Assembly (NCBI GenBank): GCA_965603825.1
Contig: CBFDEM010000016.1
Span: forward strand, 310,001 to 374,000
Direction of reading: 5' to 3'
Source: Blepharisma stoltei ATCC 30299
Taxonomy: Eukaryota; Protista; Ciliophora
DNA length: 64,000 bases
The position numbers and the translations under genes are program-made. Shown here in pieces: positions 3,197 through 13,521 of this stretch (position 1 is its first letter; each line of letters opens with the position of its first letter). Under the pieces are notes generated by a model, which saw only the letters and a program-made list of their open reading frames with translations, was not told where the DNA came from and made no database searches.

Positions 3197-5017
3197 ATGG
3201 AGGTGAAGAATATCAGAGAAGTTGTCTTAGAACAAAATCAAGAAATTTGTGTAGTAAATCCATGGCAAAGTGATAAAGCTACTGAGGAATATCTAAAGAA
3301 CCTTTTAGGAGAAAATGAGGCAGAAAAATCAGAAGTTCTAAAAAGAGAATTTGGAAATGAGGAAATGAAAAAATTTGTGAGATTTTTAATTTATAATCAA
3401 AAAAGCCGAATTGAAAGTATAGAAGAGTTGGAAATCATTATACAGAATTATAAAAATCATATTGAAACTGAAAGAGGACAAATCGATGATTCTGTAGAAG
3501 ATTCTCAAAAAGCCGGGAATAAGCCAAGATCTCCTATAAAAGTTGAAGAAATGGGTTCTGACATAGAAATCAACGAAGGATTAACTGATAGAAGCATAGA
3601 AACAAATGAAACAGCTCGCTATTGAACCTCGCTAGTTGAAGATCAAAAATCATCCTCTTCTTCAGATGAAGAAAAAGCTCAAAAATCTTCATTAATCCCA
3701 TTAAAAAAATTCAATACAGCCACTTATTCATCTTCTGATGATCCAGCCCGCTTAACCCAAGAATGTGATATTTCTTTTCATGTAGATGGTCTAACTGAGG
3801 AAATTTCATTATTTTCTGAAATTTATCAAGTCCCCTCTATTGAGTTACCTGCTAATGAGCTTTCAAACGAGCTATCTGAAGTCAAAGTCTCAAAGTAATT
3901 TTAATATAGCCCTACTCTTGACATAAAATTATGCACTTTGACAACAGTTCCATTTGGATGGGTTGTTCAACGAAAAATAAGTGATTTTTCATGGTTTCGC
4001 GATATGCTGACTACTTCTTATGCGGGCGTTTATGTTCCTCCACCAATTCCTAAAGTTAGCAAAAAAAATAAAGAAGATGCAATATTTTATTTACAAAGAT
4101 TTATAAATGATGTAATTTCTCATCCACTGCTTAGAAGATCCCCATACCTCCTTGGCTTTCTAAAAGAAAATACTAAAGAAGGCTTTACGCTTTTCCAAAA
4201 GCAATCAAAACGCCTAAAGTCACCAAAAAACGTTGAGGCGATGTTTTCAATAAACCCTACTTCAAACTGTGACAGTTCGCTTAATTCAAATTTCTCTAAA
4301 TGCCTAACTGATTATATCAAAAATACTCAACATGTCCAGAAAACTATTATTAAGCTATCTAATCAGTTCGAGATCCAATTAAGAGCCACTATGTCAACTC
4401 TCAACAGACTTGCATATAATATCAAGCAGCTTGGAAAAATGCAAGAAATTCTTCCTAACAACAAATATCAGTCAGATTTATACTCTTCCTTAAGCAGCGC
4501 TTTAGAAATCTGGGAAAAAGTCGATAACGAAAGAATAAAAACAGTTAAAGACCGCCTTTGCAAGCTTTTTGAGTATTCTTACAACGAGTCCATCCAGCTA
4601 TCCGGTTTAATAAAGATAAGAGAAAATTCTTATCAAGACTACTCAAAATATGAAAAAAAACTAATGGACAAAAAAGGAAAACTATGGGAGCAAGGAGATC
4701 CTTACAAGTGGTGGGAAAGCTCAGAAGAAGTCTATATGGACATCGACAAGTTAAAAAATGATAAAGAGTACGCATATTCTAAGATGATGCAAAAAGAAAC
4801 GAAGGTTTTAGAAGATCTGAAAAACATTTATGGGTTTTATAATTATAAGCTGCAAGATGAAACTTTTAGGCTATTGAAGTATGTGACTATAAGAAATTGT
4901 GAAAACTTCAAAGAGTTTTCAGATCATGAATGGAATATAGCGGAGAGGCTGAAGGATGGCTGGACAGAGTTTGGGGAAAAGCTAGACAAGTTCAAAATGG
5001 AAGTGCTCGCTAATTAA
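3197..5017 (+). CDS. PX-BAR sorting nexin (Vps5/SNX1-like), copy 1; 2 exons
   Basis: ATG 3197, TGA=W at 3623, intron 3895-3909. PX motif VVQRKISDFSWF...YVPPPIPK followed by a helical BAR-like region. Confidence 0.88.
3895..3909 (+). other. 15-nt spliceosomal intron
   Basis: gtaattttaatatag. Removal deletes an in-frame TAA; same position in both paralogues. Confidence 0.9.
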
Positions 5018-5079
5018 TTAGTAAAATCTTTAATAAAATTATCAACTATTAATGGGGGATTCTTTCTAATTATTTGTTG

Positions 5080-5355
5080 ATGAACTTAAGCATAAACCAA
5101 TCAGGAAGTTCTCAAAATTGCTGCACAGTTTATGTTGGAGGGCTTGCTACTATAGCGACTCCTGCGTCTATAAGAAAATATTTCTCAAAATGCGGAAAAG
5201 TAAAAAAAGTGAGGATGGCTTATAATCCTAGAGGCGAAAAAGCTGGGTTTGCTTATGTTGATTTTGCTGATTCAAGAGGTGTTGAAACTGCTTTAAAGAT
5301 TAGATATCCAAGCATAGAAGGGCGCGAAATCAAAATAAGTTTAGTCACTGGATAA
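5080..5355 (+). CDS. Small single-RRM RNA-binding protein (about 91 aa)
   Basis: RNP2 VYVGGL and RNP1 AGFAYVDF. First in-frame ATG at 5080. Confidence 0.8.
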   Translation: MNLSINQSGSSQNCCTVYVGGLATIATPASIRKYFSKCGKVKKVRMAYNPRGEKAGFAYVDFADSRGVETALKIRYPSIEGREIKISLVTG

Positions 5356-5740
5356 CGTAAAATTTGATAACAGGAATAAAATAAGCACTTATCTTACTTT
5401 ATTAATTTTTTCTCCGCCAAAATACAACAATAGATGTATGATTAAATCGTTTTAATTTATTTAAAATTCAAATTTATCGAAAAACTTTTACTCATAAATA
5501 ATGTTATATAGTGCTATAATTTATATAATTACCACAATCTTTTTAATCAATGAAAACCCATCTTTTGTTCTTTTATTCAATTTCTGCCCTATTTTCGTTG
5601 GATTATAATATATATCCGACATATACTTTATACCTTCATAATCGCTTTTCAACTATTTATGTGCTATGCCGCAACTTATGGACTAAATTAATTTTTAATT
5701 TCTTTGTTTATTTAAATATTGGCTAATTTATAAAATTTAC

Positions 5741-6604
5741 ATGCAAAAATCCACTAACAAAGCTGACAACCTTTCACTCGGGGAGATCGATTTCTACGAC
5801 TTTCTCGATTTCCCAGCCCCAGCACCAATCCAAGTTCGCGAAACTGAAGAAACTTGCACAGAAGTTAAATCGACTGGCCGCAAACAAATAGTTGACACAA
5901 AAATCTTAGGGAGGTTCCAAAGTGTTTCCAATCCTTATCCTCCTAAAAAAGAATATTTAAGATGCAAGATGATCCGTGGCCACAAAAGAGCTAACCGTCA
6001 AATTGAAAAAGGCGTAATCCCCAAGCGCACTATAAACGCATACTCAGCTATTGCTGAGTCCTATTGAAGCAAACTAACTAACTGCTTTAACGCTAACAAA
6101 AATATACTGATAGAAGAAAGTAAGACTGAAGCAGGACCAAAAACTGATGGGAAAACAAAGCGAAATGGCAATGAAAATGGAATCCCTAAGAGCTTCAATG
6201 AAAAGTTTTGCAAAAGGTATTTTTCTCCAAAAGAAGTAAGAGAGTCATATTTCTACTACACAGAGTACATTTTCGCAGAATTTGAGCCGAGTGTTTTGTG
6301 CAAAAAATTTAAAATCAAGTGCTGCAGATCTCCTAATCACACTTATGAGTGTTTAGAAAGTTGGAAATTGCTGAAGTTTTATGTACAAAAGATTATGCTT
6401 GACAATTTGTGTGTCGAGCCATGGCTTGTGATGGAAAGTACAACAGACATTTCAACGTTTCCTAAAATTACAAAAGCAATTGCAGAGCCAAAAATCGCGG
6501 AAGATGTGGATGCAGACCCAAATATCATTAAGGAAGATGATCCACTAGGAATCTTCAAAGAGCTGAATGAAGACATCAGCCTAGAGTTATTTTTTGGCAT
6601 TTAA
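5741..6604 (+). CDS. Hypothetical protein with basic segment and Cys/His cluster (287 aa)
   Basis: ORFs 5741 and 6296 join in frame through TGA 6065. Contains PKKEYLRCKMIRGHKRANRQ and LCKKFKIKCCRSPNHTYEC. Confidence 0.8.
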
Positions 6605-6707
6605 ATATCTATAAACTCGGTTTCTAAGACCTAACTTTCTAACAAAATTTTATTAATAATCTATACATGAAAGTCTAGAATTTCCAGTTTATTTTGTATT
6701 AATTGAA

Positions 6708-8594
6708 ATGGAGGAAAAAATAAGCTCTCCAACTAAACCAGCTGAATCCCCATTCCTAAACAAACTTAATGACCTATTTAGCAAAATTCTGGGTTTTGAA
6801 AACATAGACTACCAATTAAAGCAAGAAATGTTTTCTAAAGAATTTCAGAATGAGGAATTGCAAGTTGAAGAGTTCACAAAATATTTAGATAAAGCTGAAA
6901 TAAAGAGAATTGAAGATGTAAATCAGCTGGAAAGCTATATAAAAGAGTTCAAAACGCAGCTAAAAGATTGTGGAGAAAAAAATTTTAACGATGCCCAGAC
7001 TAGGTCAAGGATGAAAACTTATATGGTGCTTGGAGGGAATTTAGAAGACATAAAAATCGACCAATTAGAAGAAAGTCCAAAAGAAAATGAAAATAGCACA
7101 AAGTCAGCTAATGAGATCTCAAATGAAGAGCCAAATTATGAGGATTTTAAGACTGTGTCTTCTTCTTTTGAAGATGAAAACAAAAATGAGCCAGATAAGC
7201 ATATTTCTTCTGAAGAAATTCGTAGCGTTTATGATACAACAATTGACTCGTCATTTACAAGAGAGCCATCAAAAACTTATAAGGAAAATAGGCCAAACTC
7301 TACTACCCAAGAAGAAATAAAGCGCTCTGCAACTATTATCCCTGGTCTAACAGCTCAAAACTCACAGGAGCCTCTTTCACCTGGAATTTATAAAATTCCT
7401 GCTTTAAATCTGCCATCAAATGAACTATCTTCTCAAACTGCAACTGTAACCGTATCTAAGTAATTTTCAATTAGTCCAAATTCTGATCCAAAGGTATATA
7501 CCCTAATAACTTCTCCTTTGAATTGGACAGTTCAGCGAAAAATAGAAGATTTCACATGATTCCAAAACATCCTTACAATAGCTTATCCTGGAGTTTATAT
7601 CCCTCCACCACTCCCTACAAATGTTGGAAAAAGCAAAGAAGATTCTCTCTATAAATTTAAGGCCTTTTTACAAAGATTTATGAATGATATCATATCCCAC
7701 CCACTTCTTAAGCGATCACCAATCGTACATGGATTCTTAAAAGAAGACAACAAAGACAAATACAAGCTTTTCAAAAGGCAATCAAAAAAGCTCAAAACAC
7801 CTGAAAAAGTTGAATTAATGTTTTCTGTTGACAATGTTTCCTACTGCGATATCTCAACTAGTAATGATTTTAGTAAAAATCTGAATGATTATGTTCATAG
7901 CGCCCAAACGATTCAAAAAAACATAAAAAGACTGTCCGATCAATTTGAAGAACAGCTTAAAAATGCAGTAGCTACCATTGAAAAATTGGCTTATTCTTTC
8001 CAAGAATTAGCTAAGATTCAAGAAGTTTTTCCACAAAATAAAATCCAACAAGAAATCTATATTTCTCTAAGCCAAACATTTGAATCATGCAAAAATTCTG
8101 ACTTAGAGCGTGTAAAATCAGTAAAAGAACATATAAACACGTTTTTTAAGTACTCTTATAATGAAGTTGCTCAACTTAAAGATTTAATTAAAGAAAGAGA
8201 AAATTGGAATATAGAATATGTGAAAAATGAAAAAAAAGTTATGGGAAGAAAAGAAAAGTTGTGGGAGCAAGGAGATGCTTTGAAATGGTGGAATAGCTCA
8301 GAAGAGGCATATATGGATATTGAAAAGCTAAAAAATGATAAAGAATTAGCATTTTCTAAAATGCTCCAAAAGGAAACTCAACAGTTGGAGACAATTAGAA
8401 ACTTTTATGGATATTTTAATTATAAACTCCAAGAAGAGGCTTTGAGGTTTTTCCAAAATTCAGCCATCAGAAATTGCAAAAATTTTAAAGAATTTGCTGA
8501 TCAGGAAGCTAGCCTTGGCGCAAGGGATAATGACGGGTGGAAAGAGCTTGCTGAAAAATTGCAAAATTTGGAAGCAGAACTAAATAATAATTAG
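6708..8594 (+). CDS. PX-BAR sorting nexin, copy 2; 2 exons
   Basis: Intron 7460-7474. TGA=W at 7557 in RKIEDFT[W]F, aligned with TGG in the paralogues. Confidence 0.9.
7460..7474 (+). other. 15-nt spliceosomal intron
   Basis: gtaattttcaattag. Confidence 0.9.
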
Positions 8595-8671
8595 CAAAAA
8601 TTATAATTTAAATGATAAATAATTTTCCCTCAAAATAATATATCTATAGCTGCTTAATAAAAAGATATAAG

Positions 8672-10261
8672 ATGGAGAGGAATCAAGGCAAAAAATTTCA
8701 AGATTACTTGGGCCAGACAAATGAAGCACTAGCGATAATATTATTTTCAGGAAATATAGAAAATAAAGCTAAAGAAGATATTTTGAATAGAGAAATAATA
8801 GAAAAGCAGGTACCAATTGATGATTTTATAAGTTTTTTAAAACAAAAAGAAATTAGCTCAATTGAAAATGCAAACCAACTTCAAGTTCTTATAGAAGAAT
8901 ATCGAAATAAGGGATTAGAAAGTCCTCCAAAAAATTGTTCTATAGAAGAAACTTCAAAATCCGAAAATCCTCAACAACTAGAACAAAGCAGTAGTTTAGA
9001 TGATTATAGCTCAGTAGATTCATCACCTCGCAAGCTTGAGCTATTATCTGAAGTTTATACAGTCTCAGCCCAAAATCTCCCAGAAAATGAAATATCACTC
9101 CAAGATCTACAGATCTCTATTTCTAAGTAATTTTAAGACAGCTCGCAAACCGATTCCAAATTATATACATTGACAACTCTGCCATTTGAATGGGTTGTTC
9201 AACGAAAAATTGAAGACTTTGGGTGGCTCATAAGAAGACTTACTTCATCATTCCCTGGCTCTTTTATACCTCCACCTTTACCCAAAAACATCGGCAAAAA
9301 TAAAGAAGATTCTTTATATAAAATCATTACATTTCTTCAAAGATTTATTAATGACGTTATTTCTCATCCGCTTTTAAAGCGATCACCAATTGTTATGGGC
9401 TTTTTGAAAGAAGATGATAACGAAAAATACAAATTATTTAAAAAACAAATAAAAAAGCTTAAGAGTCCAGAAAAAGTCAAGCTGATGTACTCAACAGGTA
9501 GTGATGTGTCCTGTGACTCCTCAACAAATAATGAATTTTGCAAGCACTTGTCTGAATATATTCGCAATGCAGAATTGATACAAAAAAGTATTAAAAAGGT
9601 GTCAGAGCAGCTTGAAAATCAACTTGGTGAAGTTGTGTCTACAGTTGGAAAATTGTCTCATTATATCAAAGAATTGTTGCTAATTCAAGAAACTTTGCCG
9701 AAAAATAAATTTCAATGTGAAGTTTATGATTCAGTTATTCATACACTTGAAGTATGGCAAAATGTCGACTTGGAGCGCATAAAATCAATAAAAGATCATT
9801 TCAATACTTTTTTCAAATATTCTTACTGTGAAATTCTCCCATTAAAAAACCTTATAAAAGAAAGAGATAATTGGTTAGCTAAATACATTCCAAAAGAAAA
9901 AAAAATAAAAGAAAAAAAGGAGAAGCTTTGGGAGCAAGGAGATGTTATGAAATGGTGGGACAGCTCACAAGAAGTATATATTGATGTCGAAAAATTAAAG
10001 AATGATAAAGATTTAGCTTTTTCTAAAATGCTTAGCAAAGAAACAAAAAGTGTCGAAAAAACGAAAAACATGTATGGATTTTTTAATTCTAAATTACAAA
10101 ATGAAACGGCGTGGTTTTTGAGAAATGTTACAATAAAAAGCTGTCAGAATTTTAAAGAATATGCAAATCATGAAATAGTAGCTGCTTCAAGGACAAAGCA
10201 AGAATGGGAAGAGTTGATTGAGAAATTGGATAAATTAGAGTGTGAAGTTAAAGCTGAGTAG
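8672..10261 (+). CDS. PX-BAR sorting nexin, copy 3; 2 exons
   Basis: Intron 9127-9141 joins ORFs 8672 and 9170 in frame. Highly similar to copies 1 and 2. Confidence 0.9.
9127..9141 (+). other. 15-nt spliceosomal intron
   Basis: gtaattttaagacag. Confidence 0.9.
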
Positions 10262-10344: not shown

Positions 10345-10713
10345 TTAAAACCTACTAACTTTTAAATTTTGTAATGAGTGCAAAAGCAATGATTCTCTTA
10401 GCTCATTTTTCATCATTTCTTTATCTAGTTTAGCTTCCTTTACATATTCGCAATACTTTCATTTCCTTTTCTTTACAGATTTTATATTGTGTCACTTTTT
10501 CAAATACAGCTTCTCAAGTTTATAGCATTTCGGCTTCAAAAATCCATATTTGTGAAGTTTTAAGTCAATTTTTATTTCTCTAGCAGTTTTAGAGTTCAGG
10601 CTACCATCATCTCATCTACTAAATAAATACATTAAACTCTGCTCGCAGTCTTTGCAGCAGCAAGACTTTATGGTTTGGTTTGTATAGCATCCAAATATTT
10701 TCTTCCTTCTCAT
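10345..10713 (-). CDS. Small basic protein with N-terminal CxCxxC motif (122 aa); absent from the ORF track
   Basis: MRRKKIFGCYTNQTIKSCCCKDCEQSL...KVSRF* with three TGA=W. N-terminus matches the 11225 gene. Confidence 0.75.
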
Positions 10714-11224
10714 ATTTAATTTTAATAGATATGGATAGTAGCTAAATATGTGCCTATTATAAGATGAAAGTTTCATAAATATAGAAATAAGTTGATTTTT
10801 TCCCTCTGTAAAATCTAATAAGTGAAATAAAAGGTGATTTTGAAAAAAATTTATATCTTAGGTATTTTCAGCTTGCTAGGATCTTGCAACGGGTAATTGG
10901 GATAAACGAACCTCATTAAACTACATAAGAAGCTAATAAAAATTTTATTACTATGATCCTAGGACGAGCGATCATAATGATAATTTTAATAAATTCTATT
11001 TATTGTTAAAATACAAGTTTGGGTGGGCAAAAATTAATTCGATATATTAATATATTGTGAATCGGCTCCAAAAGTGAAAAATTATTCCACAAATGAAATC
11101 AAAATCCCGCATAAGAATTCCATGCTTGAATCGCTTCATATAGAATTTTTGTTCACATAAATAAATCCAACAAATTATATTTGATAAGAACCTAAACTAT
11201 TCATATCTAATTTTTTAATAAAAA

Positions 11225-11617
11225 ATGAGACGAAACTGCAAGAATGGAATTTATACAAGCCAGACTATAAAATCTTGCAGATGCATAGCATGCATGAGCT
11301 TTATAAGGCTTATCCTTGATCCAAATACTTGGTATACCACAAATAAGATTCATATGAGTTTGCACAACCGGTCTCATCAATTGTGTTCAAACTCTTATAA
11401 CTTGACTAAATCAATATTTGTCAAAATGCTTCATAGAGATAGAAAAAGATTAATTCCTTGGGACTTTCGTCGTTATATCAAAAATAGAAGACGTGAAAAA
11501 AGAAAAATAGTAAAATTGAAAAAGAAAAATGTTATTTGGGATATGGACGATTCTTTAGACTATTGCTCATATGCTATGAAGAATGGGTTTATAGAAAGAG
11601 GTCAATTCAGATTATAA
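11225..11617 (+). CDS. Small basic protein with N-terminal CxCxxC motif (130 aa), paralogue of 10345-10713
   Basis: MRRNCKNGIYTSQTIKSCRCIAC...; shared motif MRRxxxxGxYTxQTIKSCxCxxC. Confidence 0.75.
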   Translation: MRRNCKNGIYTSQTIKSCRCIACMSFIRLILDPNTWYTTNKIHMSLHNRSHQLCSNSYNLTKSIFVKMLHRDRKRLIPWDFRRYIKNRRREKRKIVKLKKKNVIWDMDDSLDYCSYAMKNGFIERGQFRL

Positions 11618-11863
11618 AGATATTAATTTCAATTTTTAATATAGATCATAACTATTTAATAATTGAGGTTAAAATCTACTAATTTTGAGATGATAAACTT
11701 TAGATATAAAGAGCGTAAAAAATGACTGGAATTAATTTTTGCAAAATGAAATCTTGATATATAAAATACTGACTAAGAATTTTATAAATGAGTTCTATTT
11801 AAAGAGTCTTCATCTACCATAATTTTATATCTATTCAAAGTTAGACCTAAGTTCAACTGAATT

Positions 11864-12166
11864 TTAATATAGTAACTTAGGATGACTAGCACCATAAGGG
11901 TGCGCTTTTAGTCCATCCAAATCACAGCATGAACTGGGAATGATGACTGCTCCAGTAGATTCAATTGATTTTGATGCAAGACTGGCATTTGCACCTTTGG
12001 AAAACAACTCGTTTGTGGGTTCATAATTAAAAGCGATAATTTCTAGATGCGCCTTTCCTAATCTCCTAGATATAAATTACTCATTCCACTGAATTGAAGG
12101 ATTGTGCATTTGTGCTATTTTAATGAAGTCTTTTCTTGCGCCCTTAGAACGCTGTGGAGAAAGCAT
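11864..12166 (-). pseudogene. Possible short gene or gene remnant (95 aa if intron 12066-12080 is spliced) running through the left IR arm
   Basis: MLSPQRSKGARKDF...QWNE|RLGKAHLEII...ASHPKLLY*. Canonical intron gtaatttatatctag. The frame stays open upstream to about 12355 without an in-frame ATG. Confidence 0.35.
11868..12083. repeat. Left arm of a 216-bp inverted repeat
   Basis: Reverse complement of 12466-12681 with 12 substitutions and no indels (hand alignment). Confidence 0.95.
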
Positions 12167-12465
12167 GAGATGAGATTTCTTGGGCAGAGAATTTGCTGAT
12201 AGATATGCAGTAATTAAAAATTCGGAAGTAGTTAATTCAAGTGCAGCAAAAAATAGTCCAACTTTCTTAGAAGTTGATAAAGGCTTCTCTTGTCAAGATT
12301 TCCAAGTGCTTGATTCATAATGATGTTGCTGAATTCGTGCGTGTGAGAATCCATTTTAAGCAAACCAAAATCATTTAAGTTGAACAGAATTAATTAATCC
12401 GAACGGAATTTTTTTACCTGTAAAAATGAAAATTTCTGAGCAAACTCAGCTGATGCTAGGATCTC

Positions 12466-12681
12466 TGAGTAATTTATATCTAGGAGATTAGGAAAGGCGT
12501 ATCTTAAAATTATCACTTTTAATTATGAACCCACAAACGAGTTGTTTTCCAAAGGTGCAAAAGCCAGTTGTGCATCAAATTCAATTGAATCTACTGGAGC
12601 AGTCATCATTCCCAGTTCATGCTGTGATTTGGATGGACTAAAAGCGTGCCCTTATGGTGCTAGTCATCCTAAGTCGCTATA
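12466..12681. repeat. Right arm of the 216-bp inverted repeat
   Basis: Matches the left arm; 382-bp spacer between arms. Confidence 0.95.
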
Positions 12682-12885
12682 ATTCTATATGCTTTAATTA
12701 TTTTATCTTTTAGGTACCAAAATCTTACCTTTTGAGCTTTTTGGCTATGGGAAACAGATTCGTTAGTCATCGAAGAAGATTGGTTATGCTAAATTGTCCC
12801 AATTGATAGATTTAATAATTTGTTTAGTTTTTAAATGGTTTCACTCGCAGCTTTTAATTAATTTTACGCTTTTTATAAAATTTCG

Positions 12886-13521
12886 ATGGAATATGATATT
12901 TTGAATGAGATCCTAACCAGTACAGTTTCGTCTCTATTTGAATGGAAAAATCCTGGAATGGAAGAACAAATGAGATCAAGTCTAGCCTCATTACCCCCTC
13001 CAAACTCAAGTGACTGGGTAAAGGTAGAAGGCAATCAGAAACTTGAAATGGCACTTAGGCGATTAAGAATCGATAGAAATACTACAAATGGAAGGGAGCT
13101 GAATAATAAAACAACTGATGAACTAAATACTGAAAAAAAGAAAGTTAAAAATGAGCTCAAAGCATATGACACCACTTTTAAATCACTATTCGGTCGATTA
13201 CCTAAAAGAGAAGAAAAAGAGCCTATGAGGCCACTATATATGTATTACAAAAAGATTAAGCAAGCTATCTCTAAAAGACCAGCTGAAAAAGGCAATAAAA
13301 AATTAAATCGTGATGAAGTAGCAAGAAAATTAGAAACTTTAAGAAAGGAAAGAAGTGAGTTAAAAGCAATTCTTCATAATTTTCAATTAGAGTTTTCTCA
13401 AACAAACCAGAGAAAGATAAGATATCACAAAGATATCCTACCAGTAGAAAATGAATATAAAAGATATAAAGAAGTTAAAGCTGAGATTGCAAAATTAGAC
13501 TCAGAACTGAGCAAAGCATAA
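12886..13521 (+). CDS. FAM13-like C-terminal repeat protein (211 aa)
   Basis: Two helical repeats, EKKKVKNELKAYD..F...GRLPKREEKEPMRPLYMYYK and ERSELKAILHNFQLEF...EYKRYKEVK, resembling the FAM13 C-terminus. Confidence 0.75.
   Translation: MEYDILNEILTSTVSSLFEWKNPGMEEQMRSSLASLPPPNSSDWVKVEGNQKLEMALRRLRIDRNTTNGRELNNKTTDELNTEKKKVKNELKAYDTTFKSLFGRLPKREEKEPMRPLYMYYKKIKQAISKRPAEKGNKKLNRDEVARKLETLRKERSELKAILHNFQLEFSQTNQRKIRYHKDILPVENEYKRYKEVKAEIAKLDSELSKA

Follow-up and report, generated by a model that had tools for sequence, protein, structure and literature searches.

We identified a locus in Blepharisma stoltei that is probably the soma-retained remnant of a germline mobile element, a non-autonomous, internally deleted inverted-repeat relic that has escaped elimination. 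It lies in the window, a 64,000-nucleotide stretch of contig CBFDEM010000016.1, between genes encoding proteins of 130 and 211 aa, both on the plus strand. The locus is bounded by TA, its ends belong to a dispersed family, and an intron-containing gene was the source of both arm and spacer. Two arms of 216 nt, which differ at 12 positions with no indels, enclose a spacer of 382 nt, exactly as the first-pass annotation had described them, and a TA dinucleotide stands at both outer limits of complementarity. The next-longest inverted repeats in the window do not exceed 35 nt. The MAC+IES record is identical to the window over 11774-13111, gap-free, with no IES called at or inside the element. 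The features of the locus are collected in Table 1.

Table 1. Features of the inverted-repeat locus and of its germline-limited relative (window coordinates unless another locus is given).
Feature	Position	Strand	Description
Whole element relic	11868-12681		814 bp, starts and ends in TA; in soma and germline
Left arm	11868-12083	-	element end with intron and second exon of the broken gene, reading outward
Right arm	12466-12681	+	content as left arm, reading outward; frame stop at 12680-12682
Terminal core, left	11868-11913	+	about 46 bp, begins TATAGTAA; also present at both C11 ends and at the solitary ends on C54 and C57
Terminal core, right	12636-12681	-	begins TATAGCGA read from outside
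Inner neighbour of right arm	12458-12465	+	8 bp common to the C11 and C33 copies (partly C54), absent beside the left arm
Annotated 95-aa gene model P0002 (CAG9316678.1)	11864-12166	-	spliced; fragment of the parent gene without RING domain
5' part of parent gene in spacer	12084-12383	-	homology changes frame near 12235-12290
Intron, left arm	12066-12080	-	15 nt, GT-AG, spliced in RNA (both runs)
Intron, right arm (mirror copy)	12469-12483	+	15 nt, spliced in RNA
RNA contigs of the locus itself	11815-12545		no RNA contig joins either neighbouring gene
IES site	11774-11775		323-bp germline IES, decayed BogoMITE-like ends, 94 bp outside left arm
Segment absent in X12 strain	11743-12422		680 bp, between 9-nt direct repeats 11743-11751 and 12423-12431
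Germline-limited IES	L074:428-5901 (MAC+IES contig 48); MAC junction G000:C48:378676-378678		5.5 kb, short C-rich inverted ends

The ends of the element recur at unrelated sites. Searching the B. stoltei MAC genome (41.46 Mb, 64 contigs), we found single arm copies with 82-89% identity on C11, C33 and C54, relatives that the first-pass annotation had overlooked, in addition to older relics on C62, C2, C13 and C36. The C11 copy is 1.5 kb long and carries the terminal core at both ends, the second of which shares only the outer ~46 bp; a lone copy of that second type of end occurs on C57. Five of six family ends match TAYAGYNR, for which the background in the window is 6.5e-4 per base. This pattern is the Paramecium IES consensus and resembles Tc1/mariner ends (PMC3464196). 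A search with a degenerate form of the end pattern returned no ends beyond the known ones, and its count was at control level. The earlier reading had noted neither a target site duplication nor a transposase. The exact TA at both ends had escaped it, still unproven as a target duplication, while on the second point our searches agree: no transposase was found in or near any copy, the MAC copies tested give no Pfam transposase match, and the family has yielded neither a DDE transposase nor a tyrosine recombinase. Contigs of four runs show neither an empty site nor a joint across 11868-12681, and the second strain described below retains the right end. Within the extracted loci, no long inverted repeat surrounds the other MAC relics, and the C11 interior does not match the window spacer or the other relics.

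Several copies have features of their own. The two-ended C11 copy (L004:225-1728; G000:C11:536857-538360) is annotated with two orphan gene models, and in its germline version it contains three IESs, which suggests long residence in MAC-destined DNA. On C33 (L008:1069-1953; G000:C33, ~80500-81400) a truncated element end directly follows a host gene stop codon and separates that gene from its 93%-identical, internally deleted duplicate; the arm is possibly part of the host 3' UTR. On C62 (L052:460-1720; G000:C62:289570-290830) a decayed copy of the RING gene sits in an insertion of ~1.26 kb that is missing from the adjacent tandem paralog (L058); parts of this insertion recur on C29, C7 and C5. 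The C29 locus (L056:1451-2334) contains a 28-bp inverted repeat (89%) around 830 bp that include sequence shared with the C62 insertion, and is possibly another TIR derivative.

The region had been described as free of any clear protein gene. This is incorrect, as a spliced 95-aa model is annotated there and the spacer holds the 5' part of its parent gene. On the minus strand, arm and spacer align in frame with the decayed MAC relics on C62 and C2, and the spacer, which is unique in the MAC assembly, matches the left arm of a germline unit with a score of 59.5 against a shuffle maximum of 38.4. A profile search of 1.84 billion proteins gave three hits, all of them B. stoltei MAC+IES models: the C11 model (P0001), the 95-aa model of the locus itself (P0002) and a 200-aa RING-type protein (P0003). 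The window copy of the gene is broken by its frame change in the spacer and ended by the terminal core before the RING domain, and its truncated protein is probably without function. Differences among the close arm copies fall on the three codon positions without bias (17/19/16), and these copies therefore decay neutrally. Neither ten reading frames nor P0001-P0003 gave a significant Pfam match, Rfam gave none, Atlas had no hit to the spacer frame, its leads for P0003 being RING matches that all scored under 0.9, and homologue searches brought back only the query sequences. Some of the Atlas RING leads are viral; being below 0.9, they were not counted as evidence of viral origin. A match of the spacer frame on C20 lies inside an RNA polymerase subunit gene and was rejected as chance. 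Database queries were single exons or proteins returned by the tools, and spliced or joined models were only translated locally. B. stoltei reads UGA as tryptophan, and its introns are 15-16 nt long (PMC9942806). Upstream of the element, window positions 10408-11617 hold a divergent pair of small genes that are related to each other (122 and 130 aa in the public annotation) and show a 72% inverted match over 95 bp, and positions 3926-10261 contain three PX-domain paralogs in tandem, corresponding to repeat families D1 and D3, two of which are recognized by Pfam as PX.

The RING-type protein P0003 is encoded in a 5.5-kb stretch that is missing from the MAC, where its flanks adjoin on C48. This germline-limited IES contains a 5.1-kb foldback-like unit (~629-5729 in L074) with inverted arms, each carrying an outward-facing RING gene. 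Further inward are tandem arrays of ~190-bp repeats (three inverted, ~6 and ~6 direct); the unique middle is GC-rich and matches C53 and C64 weakly. The intron of the germline gene is 16 nt long and agrees in position and phase with the 15-nt intron of the locus. The left arm of the unit has a TA-bounded piece of 268 bp, the first exon, that is missing from the right arm (L074:968-1235 vs L074:5123-5124), and the break lies at the 5' end of the intron, where the window arms also diverge. The termini of the unit differ in sequence from the ends of the window element, and we therefore consider it a cousin through the gene and not a direct parent. Close germline copies probably exist, judging from several extra diverged contigs over left arm and spacer in run X7 that have almost no counterpart in run X12. 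Run X7, a candidate MIC-enriched library, comes from a four-run study that fits the paper's four MIC-enriched fractions.

Two RNA-type runs (X8 and X10) cover the locus and both neighbouring genes and leave the intergenic gaps bare, which makes the locus its own transcription unit. Its contig depth is higher than that of the neighbouring genes. A single 512-letter RNA contig spans 12004-12545 with 30 letters missing. By binned depth, the bins 12012-12112 and 12416-12516 each lack 15 of these letters, and nothing is missing between them (an exact fit in X10, a compatible one in X8). Canonical 15-nt introns in these bins are limited to the left-arm intron on the minus strand and its mirror copy on the plus strand. 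As each missing 15 nt fits the intron of one strand, both strands are transcribed and spliced, and a full read-through cannot dominate on both, because the opposite-strand intron would stay unspliced. Depth arithmetic excluded a single 30-nt intron at 12420-12449 and other 15-nt candidates. The idea that the intron was born from a new stop codon was dropped, as an intron occupies that site in the germline relative too.

The simplest reading is that two transcripts run outward from the spacer, each through one arm and both of the same sense, with strand and start sites deduced from the logic of contigs, which drop the weaker path, and not from stranded reads. Promoter activity inside the spacer would produce two such transcripts, overlapping only there. 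As they could pair only within this overlap, the bulk of the RNA would be unable to fold into the hairpin. Transcription is not confined to the window copy. The C11 copy is represented by a 1.3-kb RNA contig and is spliced at the corresponding intron, and RNA of the C54 copy is also seen; expression is therefore a trait of the family and not a property of the inverted pair.

The locus had been proposed mainly as a hairpin-RNA gene, in which a read-through transcript forms ~200 bp of double-stranded RNA that is diced and silences or marks homologous copies. We consider such a function unlikely, and the locus is a weak candidate for a hairpin-RNA gene. As a main product the hairpin is unsupported, since each strand is spliced at its own arm and a second strain has no left arm. 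The fold itself would be very stable (-435 kcal/mol, z = -34, for the predicted read-through RNA over both arms, with perfect runs up to 66 bp), but read-through RNA is probably at most a minority product. The independent transcription unit and its elevated contig depth are consistent with a functional hairpin, diced hairpins would be scarce in mRNA libraries, and small-RNA loci bearing hairpins are known in Tetrahymena (PMC5340916). Against this, the splicing of both introns in one contig speaks against dominant read-through on both strands, no RNA contig of the locus itself covers the outer right arm, and single-arm copies are also transcribed. The G-U pairs cited in favour of the hairpin were counted correctly (5 among the arm mismatches on the plus strand, 3 on the minus strand) but carry no signal (p = 0.73), and the counts are uninformative because each of the 8 transitions gives a G-U pair on one strand or the other. 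The predicted homologous targets exist insofar as arm copies are found on C11, C54 and C33, with 6, 10 and 7 perfect 22-mers shared with the window arms, respectively. However, these are relics of the element, and no host-gene target was found in the MAC. Germline copies are possible targets of small RNAs from the window locus.

Run X12 diverges by 2-4% from the reference and is from another strain, probably HT-IV (PMC9942806). Its contigs join 11742 to 12423 at a depth of 76, which is single-copy depth, and none covers 11810-11910. From this joint at full depth it follows that in the soma of this strain the left arm and the larger part of the spacer are missing. The hairpin is thus not a fixed feature of the species, and the locus appears to be dispensable. 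Loss in this strain is likelier than gain in the reference, because 125 bp of the missing piece are flank and because the arms differ by 5.6% compared with 2-4% between the strains. The 680 bp might instead be present in both germlines and excised from the MAC of one strain only. The cleanness of the joint, its position between 9-nt direct repeats and its full depth would suit such somatic editing, as would the known IES site within the piece, which would amount to ~1 kb with the nested IES; moreover, Blepharisma has thousands of non-TA IESs bounded by direct repeats (bioRxiv 10.1101/2022.05.02.489906). Yet the joint lacks TA and falls off the element ends, resembling an ordinary microhomology deletion. 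Run X7 shows no excised form, and X12 has no low-depth contig with the deleted flank, although contigs drop rare forms. Strain-specific editing is quite improbable.

The two arms could also have arisen separately, either from two ends that landed head to head or from one end duplicated locally, with the arms homogenised later. Lone ends do occur on C54, C57 and C33, and the window arms run inward into different family sequences. However, the element terminates on either side in an exact family end with TA, and the germline relative has the same outward two-armed layout with arms diverging at the same intron, which makes an origin other than a single insertion very improbable. Purely local duplication, the null hypothesis of the first-pass annotation, does not fit either, because it cannot explain why the right arm has a neighbour in common with copies on other contigs: the inner 8 bp recur in the C11 and C33 copies and are absent by the left arm, so the right arm is more than a local mirror copy of the left. 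The foldback or TIR element that had been offered as its other option is upheld by the TA-bounded ends across contigs, the two-ended 1.5-kb relative and the germline foldback-like element with a homologous gene. We favour an insertion of one element, whose long inverted ends would be the present arms. The arms are nearest to each other (95% vs 86-91% to other copies) and have a 3-bp gap in common; copying or conversion may have kept them alike. The TA would be the target duplication of a Tc1/mariner-type enzyme, and the germline element would have undergone internal deletion, escaped elimination and so become part of MAC-destined DNA.

The inverted repeat is real, and an assembly artefact is practically negligible: short-read contigs cannot orient a spacer between arms whose longest perfect run is 66 bp, but independent contigs run through each of the four arm junctions without mismatch, 12 differences distinguish the arms and the assembly was built from HiFi reads (PMC9942806).

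Membership of the Tc1/mariner group is likely from the ends, given the TIRs common to copies at unrelated sites (the window, both ends of C11, C54 and C57) and the TA ends with a TAYAGYNR-like start, but it is unproven because there is no empty site and no transposase. The element is not a MITE, a class of short, non-coding elements in many uniform copies, as it is 814 bp long and gene-derived with few, unlike MAC copies. It has the long inverted arms around a variable middle that are typical of foldback elements. The tandem sub-repeats of such arms are found only in the germline relative, the window copy having no direct repeat. Nor is it an IES, which would be TA-bounded and partly excised: none is called in the MAC+IES record and no excision joint was seen, in contigs that miss rare excision.

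Among known systems, the Paramecium elements Sardine and Thon (PMC3464196) share TA-bounded TAYAGYNR-type ends, long inverted ends, hypothetical cargo genes and scattered lone ends. In contrast, the B. stoltei copies stay in the MAC and are transcribed, their arms hold coding sequence, and no transposase or recombinase was found. Bogo, BogoMITE and BstTc1 (PMC9942856) are from the same genome and include non-autonomous inverted-repeat derivatives of germline elements. Their TIRs, however, start with poly-C, are 30-38 bp long and have TAA or TATA duplications, with full-length copies in IESs (PMC9942856), whereas the window element is somatic and its ends are unrelated. The foldback elements FB, Galileo and Tetris (PMC4079207) have long inverted arms and a variable middle, and the modular arms of the L074 unit with their ~190-bp tandem repeats are similar. 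The window copy differs in lacking tandem repeats, in being TA-bounded without flanking duplications of 8-10 bp and in carrying a gene in its arms. The TASL loci of Tetrahymena (PMC5340916) are likewise macronuclear, transcribed, pseudogene-like and hairpin-capable, but they form short terminal stems on one transcript and their small RNAs have been shown, while the main transcripts of the locus appear to be one-armed.

We did not find this element family, including its germline-limited foldback-like member and its gene-bearing arms, in the main text of the published description of Blepharisma repeats. The words 'foldback' and 'tandem' are absent from the text of the preprint on Blepharisma. 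Elements of this kind are able to evade elimination, to remain transcribed and spliced and to become annotated as orphan genes. It is conceivable, though doubtful, that a soma-retained relic of an undescribed germline foldback family serves as a small-RNA source or maternal template that decides the elimination of its germline copies; the two mating strains would then differ in this respect, as the left arm and spacer are kept in one MAC and missing from the other. The strain difference is a natural experiment on the effect of a somatic copy on small RNAs or on the excision of its germline kin.
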